Below are positions 24,022 to 29,660 of a stretch of 64,000 nucleotides of DNA, one piece after another (within the stretch, counting starts at the first letter, position 1; each line of letters opens with the position of its first letter). The DNA is from Amoeboaphelidium protococcarum X5 (Eukaryota > Fungi > Aphelidiomycota), in assembly GCA_023515725.1 (NCBI GenBank), contig JALDTO010000057.1, forward strand, positions 186,001 through 250,000, given 5' to 3'. Both the position numbers and the translations under genes were made by a program. The notes below the pieces were generated by a model. It ran no database searches, was not told the origin of the DNA, and worked only from the letters and a program-made list of their open reading frames with translations.

Positions 24022-24115
24022 AGTTGCATGTTCACATGTTTATTAAAATATCTGCTGATTTACCCTCTAATTGTTTATAGCTTAATGTATTTATATGATG
24101 TACTTTGGATGTATT

Positions 24116-24269
24116 TGTTAAGATGAAACCAAAAAGGTAAATTATATCTTTCGATAATACTGACTTTATTCTCAATTGAGATGAAAATATTTTTCACACT
24201 TCAACCTAAGCCACTCGGATCAGTGACCCCTGAACCGACAACCGAAGCTCTGGAACACCAACCTTCACA
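24116..24269 (-). repeat. 3' LTR (154 bp)
   Basis: Identical by eye to 28821-28974. Preceded on the minus strand by the purine-rich tract ACAGGAGAGTG (24270-24280). Confidence 0.97.
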
Positions 24270-24280
24270 CACTCTCCTGT

Positions 24281-27200
24281 TCAAGAGCTTTTAAGACCAA
24301 AACGACAAACATGCTGAACAAAAGCCTTGGCGACAGTCATCGGCTTTGTAAGAATGTCAGCAGCTTGAGCTCCAGTTTTACAATACACTAACTTGATAAT
24401 ACCACGTTCAACCATCTCGCGTATGAAGTGGAATCGCACTTCAATGTGCTTTGTGCGACTAAAGCTTTCAGGATTTTTACTTAAGGCAATACACGCTTGA
24501 TTATCCTCCAGCATGACAGTTGCTTTCTCTTTAGGATTAGTTTAGGTGATATCGACCAAACTGGGATAGCCCAACAATTCTACCTATTCGTTACTAAAAT
24601 CAAATCCAATTTCTTTCAACAGTTCTCTGACCCATGCAACTTCTTGACTAGCAAATGTACAAGCATAATACTCTGCTTCGGTTGAACTGAGTGAGACTTT
24701 AGGTTATAACTTAGACTTCCAACTGACGGCAGCACCAGCCATCAACAAAGCATAACCAGTTTGAGAACGACGCGTATCTTTATCGTTCGCATAATCTGCA
24801 TCAACGTAGACAAACGGAGTCAGATCATTATGACCATTGTATACCAATCCCATATCTATAGTACCTCTCAAGTAGCGCAGGACGCGTTTAGCAGCTTGCC
24901 AGTGTCTTTAACTGGGCCGACTTACAGCACGTGAAAGTTCACTTACAGCAAATGCGATGTCAGGTCGCGTAGCTACTAGTAAATACATTAAACTTCCGAC
25001 TACAGATCGATACACATCAGGCTGTTCAAAGTCGACATCAAATTCAGGTCTTTCAACCATGGGCAAACTCACAGGTGTACTTTTATCCATATCAAACTTC
25101 TTCAATATTCTATCACAATAAGCAGTTTAGTCGAGAGTAATCGTTTTGTTCACTCTATCTCTACGAACTCTTATGCCAACAATGAACTCAAGGTCACCCA
25201 AGTCTCTCATATCGAACGCTTCCTACAATAAGTTCTGCACCTCACATAGCTACTGTTGGTCCTTTGTGATAAACATAATGTCATCGACATACAAAGCAAT
25301 TATGAACAGCTTTTCACCTTCACCTTTAACGTACACACAATTGTCAGCTGAACATCTCGTAAATCCGAGATTGATACGCAGAAATTAGTCTATCTTATTA
25401 TTCCAGCACCTTGGGGCTTACTTAAGACCATACATACTCTTCTTCAACTTTAATATCTTACATTCAAACTCAGTATGAGAAGGTCCAGCCATATAAATTT
25501 CTTCATCCAAATCTCCATTTAAAAACGCGGTGCTAAAATCCATCTGCTTTATTTCAAGATCATACTTAGCTGCAATAGCCATCAGCAACCTGATCGTGCT
25601 GATTTTAGCCACAGGAGCGAAGGTTTCGTTGTAATCAACACCACTCACTTACTTAAATCCTTTCACAACCAATCTACTCTTGTACCTCTCCAATGAACCA
25701 TCACTGTTCAATTTTATCTTAAACACCCACTTACAGGGCAACAACTTCCGACCCACTGGTAACTCACCAACGACTTCCCACGTCTCATTCTTGATTAAGC
25801 TCCGAAGTTCAGAGAGTAATGACTCTTTCCATTACGGCCACTACTTACTTTTACGCGCCTCTTCAACACTCTTTGGTGTAGATGGAATAAGAGGATCAAC
25901 CAACAATACATACTTATCAAACTCTTTGACTTTATCATTTATGAGAAGATTAAGTAATAATGAATGAAGCTCAGCAAGTGATTCAGGTAATGGCCATTCT
26001 TCATCCGCCTCATCAGCACTGTGACTACTTTCACTGTCACTACAGACATTGGACTTTACACTTTCACTATCACTAGTGACACTTAACAATTCAGTCTACT
26101 GAACACTTTGCACCTATTCACTCTCCTGTTCTGAAGGCTGAAGTGTCCTTGTTTAAATCGGAAGAGTTGTACGCGCCAGAGATGATCTAGTGTTACTCCT
26201 TGTTTGGACTTTACGTCCCAGAGTAGGTGCTTACTATCTCCTTGTTTGCACGACACCACTCTCCGACTCCAGACAATCGTCAGACATATCCTCAGACAGG
26301 GACTACTCCATTTACTCACAACCAAACGATGGCTAATTACATTTATCAGAACTGGACATTGGAACTTGATTCTCGTAGAATTCAACTTCCCCAATGGGAA
26401 CATCAATGATCTTACGTCTATCTGCCGTCAATATACTGTAACTCGACGGTTTATAGCCGATAAAATATCCATCTTCAGTCACTTTGCCAAACTTAATCTA
26501 AGACAAGCGAGATGCCTTGGGAACATAGTATGTAACTGCGCAACCAAAGCGATGAATTCTTTCCAGCGGAGGACTACTGCCATAATACACCTCATAAGGA
26601 CTTTGCTTAGTCTGACCGGCATAATTCCTCCCATTAGATTAGCAACGATTGTGTACATGCGTAAAAGCACGCAGAGCATACGGCCATAGATTACCAGATA
26701 TTTTACTGGAATGCAATAGAACTTTAGTACCTTCAACAACAGTTCTGTTGGCTCTTTCAGCTACACCATTCAACTGGGGTGTTTTTCTCGGTACCAGATC
26801 CAGTAATATACCTTAAGAGAGGCACCATTCCTTGAACTCATTAGAGATAAATTCTCCACCTCTATCGGAACGAATCGTGTTAACGCGTTCATTGGTTTCC
26901 AAACATATTCTTGTGTGCAACTATTAGAACGCAGAGAACGTTTCGTTCTTGGACTTCAGCGGTATAGTCCAAATACAACCACTGAAGTCATCTACCACAG
27001 TCAGAATATACTTTTCATGATGAATAGATTACGGCTTAATATCGGTGATCAAATCCATATGCAGTAATCCTAACAGACGATTAGAGCGCAATTTTGTCAC
27101 ATTAGAAGCTCTAAAGGACTACCTTGTCATCTTCGTTTGCAAGCAGTCAGGACAATCACGCCAACTAAGATTCTTATTCTTAAAAGCATTTTCAGCTACG

Positions 27201-27808
27201 GCTATGTCTTCAAAATGCCCATCTCTGTGCATCTTCTCGAAAGTTTTGAAACCTTTGTGACCAAATTTACAATGAAGATCCAGTGCAGAGAGCTTGGGGG
27301 ACACGTTATTTAGCTTGAGAGCAGCTGTTGAGACAGATTCGCTCTTAGACACTTGACAGTCTATGACATACAGCCTGCTTGGAGTGAGGAATCCAGATCC
27401 AACAGGTTTACCATTCTTTTTAATCTTGACCTTTCTGTCTCCATACGATATCTCATACCCTTCGAGATCAAGCAGTAAGACAGGAAACAGATTATAGCCA
27501 AAGTTAGGAGAGTAAAACACGTTTTCTATCTCCATATGATGAGGGACACCATCATAAAATAGAGAGCAAACCAACTTTCCTTTACCAGTTATGAGTATCT
27601 TCTAACCATCATCAGCTGTACTACAAAACGCTTCATATGGTTCGAAGTCTTACAACCAATCCTTCCTATTCACAACACATGCAGTCGCTCCACCATCACT
27701 GATCATGATATCTCGGTTAGACATGCCTGGAACAATTTAGGAAGTATTCTCCATCAAAGAAGATAAGATAATAGGATTAGAAACCTGTATATTTGTACCA
27801 CTCGCAAG
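24281..27808 (-). CDS. Copia Pol (protease, integrase, reverse transcriptase, RNase H)
   Basis: Protease ISDGGAT; integrase HCKFGH...CPDC, LHMD, VVDDFSG, IRSDRGGEF, TPQLNGVAERANR; RT ETFAPVA, QMDFSTAFLNG, GLKQAPRCW, LYVDDI; RNase H YVDADY, STEAEY, EDNQ, RTKHIEVRFHF, ADILTK. All track fragments are in one frame. Confidence 0.95.
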
Positions 27809-28807
27809 TCATTCTTGCTTGACGCGTTTATCTCTACCGCGGATACTGTCAAACCAGGATGGGCGCCTCGCTTTGTTCTTCTCTAAATTCCAGCACTCAT
27901 CTTCTACATGATTGCCATATCTCTTACAGTTAGAGCAGAACACCTCATTATCCTTGCGAGATCTCTTTTCACCTGACTTTCCATCACGCGTCATTAATGC
28001 TTTGATACTGCCAGTTAGTTCACCCAATCCTTTGCTGAACATCGCGACCAAGTCACTTTGAACTGAATGAGGTACAGAATTAACTACTTCGACCGATTAA
28101 GTCGCAACAGCTTCTTCACCTCTCTCACTTGACTCCTTGTCCTGTTGTTCGCTCACCTCAAAATTCGTTAACAGCTTCTTCAATCTCTTACAGGTCAGTC
28201 TCTTCTTCGTATTTAAGGCATAATAAGTCCTCACGGATTTCACTAACTCGCCATATCTCTACTTTGGCAGCTTGTTTAAACACTTCAGAGCCAAAGATTC
28301 TGAGGTTATACTCTTGTCGCCGCACTCTCTCAGATCTCTCTGCAGATCCTCCATCTTGAGAACAAATGTTATAGCACTAACCGTATCAAACTGCAGATTG
28401 TTAATTTTAGCGTTGAGTAAGTTAATGTTCTCAATTGACTTTTGATTAAACAGATTTTTGATGACTTTGATACATTTATAAGCAAACTTCTAACTAGAGA
28501 TGTGGATCTTCAGATCCTCCTTCACAGTTGATTGGATAATCCCAACGGCTTTACTGTTCATGATCAGGAGTTAATTCTGCAGCTTAGCCACACGAGATTG
28601 GCGTTTTTACTTCACTTCGGCGAGTTCTAACTCTTTAAGATACAGATGAGACAGTGATGGTAAATTCTAAATTTTCTTGTAGAATTCCCTCTCCACTGCT
28701 GCATCACACTCTTCTTTACGCAGTAGCATCATAACGTACCGCAACCAAGAGCGGAAATTGGAGCCATTGAACAATACGCGCATAGTATCCGTATCAGACA
28801 TTACCAT
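27809..28807 (-). CDS. Copia Gag ending in a single TGA in frame with Pol
   Basis: ATG 28807, FNGSNFRSW, zinc knuckle CSNCKRYGNHVEDEC, TGA at 27811-27809. Confidence 0.9.
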
Positions 28808-28810
28808 TGG

Positions 28811-28820
28811 TGAGAATAAA
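28811..28820 (-). promoter_or_regulatory. Primer-binding-site position, TTTATTCTCA, complementary to the element's own LTR
   Basis: Abuts the 5' LTR, lacks TGG, and is the exact reverse complement of sense-strand TGAGAATAAA at 28879-28870. Confidence 0.6.
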
Positions 28821-28974
28821 TGTTAAGATGAAACCAAAAAGGTAAATTATATCTTTCGATAATACTGACTTTATTCTCAATTGAGATGAAAATATTTTTC
28901 ACACTTCAACCTAAGCCACTCGGATCAGTGACCCCTGAACCGACAACCGAAGCTCTGGAACACCAACCTTCACA
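28821..28974 (-). repeat. 5' LTR (154 bp)
   Basis: Identical to 24116-24269 and flanked by TSD GTATT. Confidence 0.97.
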
Positions 28975-29660
28975 GTATTTTCTGTGGCCTTTAAAACTTT
29001 CATTTTCAACAGTTTCCCTTGCCGACACTTGCTTAGTTTGGCAATAATTTTGTGACAAGCATGCATCTGCAATATTTACACTTTAGAGTATTTACTGAGC
29101 GTCGCTGATGTTTTAAACTGTCGGAACATAAAAAGAAGAGAAGAGATATGCTTTATAAGTGTCATACCATAATAATGGTGGTGGTTTGTCCTTTAAAGGT
29201 ACGGTAATATACGATGCGTTAATATGGTTTGATTGAAAGTGCGGCAAACTTATAAATGGCCACGTTCGCGTAAAGTGTCACCCAACTCTAAGCGCTTTTT
29301 CTGTCGAGCTTAATGGAAGCACATTACATCTTCCCTGACGTCATAATTTGTTAAAGTGGGGCCCGAATGGCCATCTCGAAGTTTTAAGGTCGAATGATGT
29401 TTGGTGTAACGTCAGGCGTCGAATGTGACTGGCGTATGATCTTAGTCAGTCGTTACATGATGTGACCTTAAAAAGTCATTTGTCAACGCTCTTTGGTTAA
29501 TTTTTGGTCATACGTTGCATTGCTGGCGTTACTTGATCATCTTATGTTACAGCATGTCAGCAGGCTGGTAAGACATGACATGGAATGTGTTCGATATCGT
29601 ATTTCTCTTTCTATTCAAACATCTAATAATAATCGAATCGCTCTTATACATAGAATTAAG

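Follow-up and report, generated by a model that had tools for sequence, protein, structure and literature searches.

The window, a stretch of 64,000 nucleotides of the genome of Amoeboaphelidium protococcarum X5, carries at positions 28974-24116 on the minus strand an intact copy of a Ty1/copia retrotransposon. Its two long terminal repeats (LTRs) of 154 bp, the 5' LTR at 28821-28974 with the ends TGTG...AACA and the 3' LTR at 24116-24269, show 0 differences, and a target-site duplication (TSD), AATAC on the element strand, lies directly outside both of them (28975-28979 and 24111-24115), so that the edge of the LTR is defined to the base. The interior consists of a gag open reading frame (27809-28807, from the ATG at 28807 to an in-frame TGA at 27809-27811, a stop that is closely preceded by a zinc knuckle), followed in the frame of gag by pol with protease, integrase, reverse transcriptase (RT) and RNase H (24281-27808, recognized by Pfam matches and closed by a TGA at 24281-24283), and of a polypurine tract, AACAGGAGAGTG, which adjoins the 3' LTR (24270-24281). 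As a gag-pre-integrase domain (PF13976) is located upstream of PF07727 (RVT_2, C57:211055-211789) in pol, and as PF22936, PF00665 and PF07727 are present in P0001, a database protein with 100% identity to this pol, the element is assigned to Ty1/copia. The closest proteins that bear an organism name come from A. protococcarum. The gag-protease-integrase-RT-RNase H order, the TG...CA ends of the LTRs, the 5-bp TSD and the polypurine tract before the 3' LTR are equally those of a Ty1/copia element, as the original prediction, made from the letters of the window, had proposed. Pfam scans of short stop-free pieces of gag gave almost no matches.

With TAA and TAG read as glutamine, gag and pol form a single frame of 1508 codons, the sole interruption of which is the TGA at codon 333, at the gag/protease junction; translated with the standard code, the interior of the element is full of stops. 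Within this frame (24281-28807), 36 codons are TAA or TAG versus 34 that are CAA or CAG, and the element is fully adapted to the reassigned code of its host. An RVT_2 search of the genome yielded about a dozen copia families, the LTR edges of which were set by comparison of the 5' with the 3' copy, and the element of the window represents family B. The single TGA that parts its in-frame gag from pol (27809-27811, minus strand) is the only stop codon in the code of this genome. The same TGA stands just before the DSGAS protease motif in family H (L079), and no TGA is found within the first 490 codons of families A and I, which suggests a candidate programmed TGA read-through in some of the copia families only. 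In family C (L057), the one copy that was translated has an in-frame TGA at codon 579 of the polyprotein, in the N-terminal region of the integrase, which may be either a defect or a site of read-through; the RT-side loci of the four copies of this family are near-identical.

Complementarity across the LTR edge

On the minus strand, the LTR ends with ...CTTAACA at 28821, and is followed without a spacer by 10 nt (28820-28811), TTTATTCTCA, that match the reverse complement of TGAGAATAAA, at 28879-28870 within the LTR, at every base; 49 nt separate the two arms. This perfect complementarity, 10 of 10 nt, had been the core of the original prediction and is confirmed to the base, as is the statement that neither a TGG match to a tRNA 3' end nor a half-tRNA-Met primer-binding site (PBS) is present. 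On these grounds, the putative PBS (28811-28820) can be read neither as the complement of a tRNA 3' end nor as a half-tRNA-Met site; more generally, it does not show the complementarity to an anticodon stem-loop (Met, Ile or Lys) which characterizes half-tRNA priming. Arm 1 (28870-28879), the putative self-primer and presumed 5' end of R, includes an AATAAA motif and is adjoined upstream by a pyrimidine-rich tract (28880-28893), which may represent the core-promoter and start region together with the end of U3. The copy of arm 1 in the 3' LTR is found at 24165-24174 (genome pattern match C57:210165-210174).

The 10-bp duplex stops at both ends, with no outward extension on either side. When LTR boundaries are placed at random in the same window, an anchored complement of at least 10 nt within the preceding 154 nt is encountered with P = 1.8e-4, and one of at least 11 nt in 0 of 5.5e5 draws. 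The duplex closes the minimum free energy (MFE) fold of this element (z = -2.2). Two smaller features of the original prediction fared less uniformly. The GU next to arm 1 does pair with the AC near the end of the LTR in the MFE fold, but only if the last base of the LTR bulges out, and the TATC-GAAA-GATA hairpin between the arms is present at 28861-28850, but, with its 4 bp, lies outside the MFE fold of this family and carries little weight. In families A, B and C, the 5' part of the arm is in addition one half of a short palindrome, the other half of which is located upstream in the LTR, and the RNA might therefore start further upstream than the arm.

Family B is represented in the genome by 22 LTR matches, among them solo LTRs with TSDs of their own. 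Five 5' LTR-PBS junctions are found, nearly all 100% identical; four of the five have the same PBS, and copy L004 shows a single mismatch to the arm. To judge by these copies, the family has been active very recently. A nest of transposons at G000:C264:1488403-1518157 (L001, L004, L034, L040, L041, L075, L077) contains a family E element that inserted elements of families H and B have apparently interrupted, and a 2461-bp tandem duplication that includes a family B 5' LTR-PBS, L004 being one of the duplicated copies. Four solo LTRs on C206 and C98 (L013-L016), 93-95% identical to family B, have common flanks and a common TSD, CAATG, and thus go back to one solo LTR that was copied along with a larger duplicated repeat.

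Related copia families and the tRNA-type controls

A phmmer search with the protease-integrase piece returned few relatives besides P0001, through which the relatives X, Y and Z were reached. The comparison of LTR-PBS junctions covers families A, B and C of this genome, family Z of a second A. protococcarum assembly (identical LTRs of 217 bp, TSD GATGC), and families X (identical LTRs of 196 bp) and Y, which derive from metagenomes, samples ERZ28654292 and JGI 3300072388, and use the standard code. The clade members D, E, F, L, P0039, the contig of which is partial and without 5' end, and P0007 stand outside this comparison; the 5' LTRs of D, a single copy, and F are located at C192:899675-899828 and C146:734727-734884, respectively. 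The copy of family D adjoins a satellite, the unit of which measures about 353 bp and long arrays of which are present on four contigs (C192:905393-906561, C235:650-8625, C244:387690-391541 and C211:4735-6341).

In all six families, a perfect PBS-LTR match of 9 to 11 bp begins 0 nt after the LTR and spans a loop of 41 to 66 nt, and the sequences involved differ: 11 bp with a loop of 41 nt in A, 10 bp with 49 nt in B, 11 bp with 48 nt in C, 11 bp with 53 nt in Y, and only 9 bp in two of the six, X (66 nt) and Z (46 nt). Counted by script from the edge of the LTR as common anchor, the six duplexes comprise 61 pair cells, none of which is a mismatch; 7 of the 11 positions covary, positions 4 to 10 each being occupied by two to four types of Watson-Crick pairs. 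The original prediction had looked to related copia families either for compensatory changes between PBS and arm or for a loss of the complementarity that would speak against it; the changes are there, and the complementarity is kept in every one of the six. Its boundaries are kept as well. The complementarity always begins at the first base past ...ACA, the arm always ends in AAA, and the pairing always stops exactly at the 5' end of the arm, just downstream of a CT-rich tract, an arrangement that would fit an RNA 5' end at this position. The MFE folds of all six contain or are closed by the duplex, with z between -2.2 and -4.1 in five families and of -1.5 in Y; a 4-bp hairpin at a similar site of the loop is part of the MFE fold of A, X and Y, but not of B. 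The gag ATG follows 3 to 47 nt past the PBS with no tRNA-type site in between, and AACAGGCGGAAG, similar to AACAGGAGAGTG, precedes the 3' LTR in X and Y.

In the RT/RNase H tree, the five self-type elements A, B, C, X and Y form one group with a support of 93/96, which comprises seven further members outside the junction reading, among them P0045, the protein of Z, while every element with a tRNA-type PBS is placed outside. Among 5.8 billion database proteins the group is small, and apart from the families of A. protococcarum only X, Y and one partial contig belong to it. The putative self-priming is thus a trait of a whole copia clade, made up of A. protococcarum families and a few environmental elements, and not the quirk of one copy. 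X and Y (L093-L097) are the closest relatives outside this genome and use the standard code, yet the RT tree places them in the midst of the families from A. protococcarum; related hosts that have not been sampled, or a transfer from host to host, are candidate explanations.

The copia families outside the group show the opposite arrangement, as in the tRNA-primed clades the PBS is fixed and the LTRs change. Families G (L055/L037) and H (L079) possess a common PBS, CGTTATCAGCAC, despite LTRs that are unrelated in sequence; it reads as a putative complement of a tRNA-Ile anticodon arm with inosine, the type described for the plant Bianca elements. Family I (L068-L071) has the half-tRNA-Met site GATTATGAGACC, and the PBS of family M (L054), GATTAAGAGTCC, includes a half-tRNA-Lys site, the one reported for the fungal FunCo1. 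A metagenomic relative with 45% identity (L098) possesses a PBS of the half-tRNA type, GGTTATGAGCCC, and elements of Lolium and Populus, inspected at their LTR edges, have the tRNA-Met PBS TGGTATCAGAGC; a Vigna locus holds a tandem array of RT fragments. The longest anchored LTR complement in the tRNA-type elements is 7 nt. Stems that connect the middle of the LTR with its end exist nevertheless in some of them. Families H and I have an 8-bp stem between mid-LTR and U5, the 3' arm of which lies within the LTR and is followed by the tRNA site. Family M (L054:1270-1401), for which no second copy was found in the genome and the LTR of which is therefore putative, displays a stem of 11 bp, one of them G-U, in which a TGAGGG... 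motif of the putative LTR pairs with the bases just before the half-tRNA-Lys-type site. This stem may represent a stage halfway from priming by tRNA to self-priming, and together with those of H and I suggests that the evolutionary path to self-priming may be short.

Priming of reverse transcription

The best reading of this recently active copia element is, in our judgement, that it probably primes reverse transcription with its own RNA in the manner of Tf1 and without a tRNA. Transcription would start at or just upstream of 28879, directly past the pyrimidine-rich tract, and the first 10 nt of the RNA, TGAGAATAAA, would, in line with sequence and predicted fold, turn back over the 49-nt loop and pair with the 10 nt adjoining the LTR. 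By analogy with Tf1, the RNase H of the element would cut at the 3' end of the arm, which the reverse transcriptase would then extend, with the last base of the LTR as the first base copied; the edge of the LTR and the start of the complementarity would for this reason coincide to the base. Should the primer be retained, as it is in Tf1, it would be copied back into the PBS during plus-strand strong-stop synthesis, a step through which the arms would remain perfectly matched and drift together. As the LTR edge marks the start of minus-strand synthesis, the primer must pair with the first bases past the LTR, and an arm that is the only complementary sequence found and covaries with the PBS shows the pattern expected of a primer.

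Alternatively, the stem between LTR and leader may be real and conserved but serve a structural role, such as packaging, dimerization, cyclization or presentation of the priming site, with another RNA, or the arm of a co-packaged RNA in trans, as the primer. The U5-IR and U5-leader stems of retroviruses are precedents for structural stems, and the tRNA-primed families H, I and M, the LTR bounds of M being putative, with their 8 to 11 bp between mid-LTR and the 3' end of the LTR, demonstrate that such stems exist beside tRNA sites and without self-priming. In H and I, however, the 3' arm is positioned inside U5 and a tRNA-type PBS comes thereafter, while the 3' arm of the six self-type families sits directly at the LTR edge, beginning with the first base past it, and is separated from the gag ATG by no tRNA-type site; as the 3' end of any primer must pair at the LTR edge and no complement other than the arm was found, we regard a purely structural stem as unlikely. 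Priming in trans by the arm of a partner RNA is a variant of self-priming and not its refutation.

In this genome, the neighbouring copia clades are as a rule primed by half-tRNAs, and a fragment of a host tRNA or another small host RNA might be the primer here as well, the copy in the LTR being incidental or a mimic. The arms of A and B in fact resemble an anticodon loop (T-GAG-R-A, readable as U33-GAG-R-A) followed by a weak stem, and the tRNA survey, in which 63 of 1171 tRNA candidates were scored and 100 of the 197 genomic matches to the 10-mer were compared, leaves room for such a molecule. On the other hand, ARAGORN finds no tRNA in the window, none of the 10-mer matches listed (100 of 197) falls within a listed tRNA, and the A/B arm combined with a T-arm motif is present at two sites of the genome, as many as expected by chance, neither of which is a listed tRNA. 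Moreover, a different host primer would be required for each of the six families and would also have been copied into the LTR of that family, the reverse of what is seen in G and H, and a host RNA primer hence appears very improbable. That the inverted repeat arose by chance in AT-rich sequence could be argued from the A/T-rich arm with its AATAAA and from the 197 occurrences of the 10-mer in the genome, about twice those of the reversed-pattern control. The P value of the anchored match for one element, the compensatory changes without a mismatch across six families and the limit of 7 nt in tRNA-type relatives effectively refute this reading, which retains next to no credibility.

Relation to known priming systems

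Most LTR elements depend on a host tRNA to prime reverse transcription, and to our knowledge exceptions that have been shown experimentally are few. The covariation of the putative primer duplex across six families makes the comparative case for self-priming in the second great superfamily of LTR elements an unusually clean one, in a host group the transposons of which are almost unstudied. One genome offers a natural series in which half-tRNA clades with an R-U5 stem occur beside putatively self-primed clades, and which could show how the switch happens. Self-priming would in addition free the element from defences based on tRNA-derived small RNAs.

The mechanism as such is not new, being proven in Tf1 and predicted in plant copia elements. 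The original prediction of self-priming gains from the six covarying families, their common RT clade and their half-tRNA neighbours, while its accompanying supposition, offered subject to a check of the literature, that self-priming was not known in Ty1/copia has to be given up and the element is not the first of its kind. Self-priming has been predicted for the whole plant Ty1/copia TAR lineage (Neumann et al., 2019; PMC6317226) and, as cited there, had already been proposed for the plant copia elements Houba and Osr-1 (Capy, 2005). The definition used for this prediction, a complement of at least 10 bp in the 5' LTR to a region that starts 0-5 bp past the LTR (Neumann et al., 2019; PMC6317226), applies to the element of the window with 10 bp at offset 0. 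Like the plant TAR elements (Houba, Osr-1, Fourf), the families described here are Ty1/copia without a tRNA PBS and follow the same rule of LTR complementarity, but their hosts are an aphelid, a relative of fungi, and environmental eukaryotes, and the best plant matches that were fetched, from Lolium and Populus, have tRNA-Met PBSs. We know of no experimental test of self-priming in the plant TAR lineage. In the literature searched, no report of a self-priming copia element outside plants and nothing on retrotransposons of aphelids was found.

With the half-tRNA-primed copia elements (copia, Ty5, Osser, Bianca, FunCo1), the families have in common the superfamily, a PBS that adjoins the LTR and the absence of TGG, but their PBS matches the LTR of the element itself instead of an anticodon stem-loop. 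The fungal GalEa copia elements, like those described here from the fungal side of the tree and without a tRNA PBS, are described as explicitly not Tf1-like, an LTR complement having been looked for without success (Donnart et al., 2017; PMC5445492); where GalEa possesses a palindromic Conserved Hairpin Site at the position of the PBS (PMC5445492), a plain LTR complement without PBS palindrome is present here. A more far-reaching scenario, possible although we would not call it probable, is that a monophyletic non-plant copia lineage of aphelids and a few unsampled eukaryotes switched from half-tRNAs to self-priming in an event separate from those in Tf1/sushi and in TAR, with the 3' arm of an ancestral R-U5 stem, such as neighbouring clades still possess beside a tRNA site, moving across the LTR edge, the primer arm doubling as AATAAA signal in some families and copy-back keeping the arms matched.

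The closest functional parallel would be Tf1, the RNA of which pairs with the PBS through its first 11 nt and is cleaved by RNase H between bases 11 and 12 (PMC7175516). As in Tf1 and Tf2 of Schizosaccharomyces pombe and in the Tf1/sushi elements, the PBS adjoins the 5' LTR, is complementary to upstream LTR sequence (11 nt in Tf1, 9-11 bp here, in a duplex that closes a structured loop) and is not accompanied by a tRNA site. Different from Tf1, LTR length is far smaller, at 120-217 bp, and the arms enclose a loop of 41-66 nt, and cleavage, start site and primer retention, shown for Tf1, are here only inferred. Tf1/sushi belongs to Ty3/gypsy (Metaviridae), in which RT precedes integrase and the RT groups with those of chromoviruses, whereas the domain order of the families described here, with integrase before RT, and their RT family (RVT_2) are those of copia and exclude membership in the Tf1/sushi lineage; with this domain order, an evolution of the trait independent of Tf1/sushi is plausible. 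The element thus probably works like Tf1 without belonging to the lineage of Tf1.
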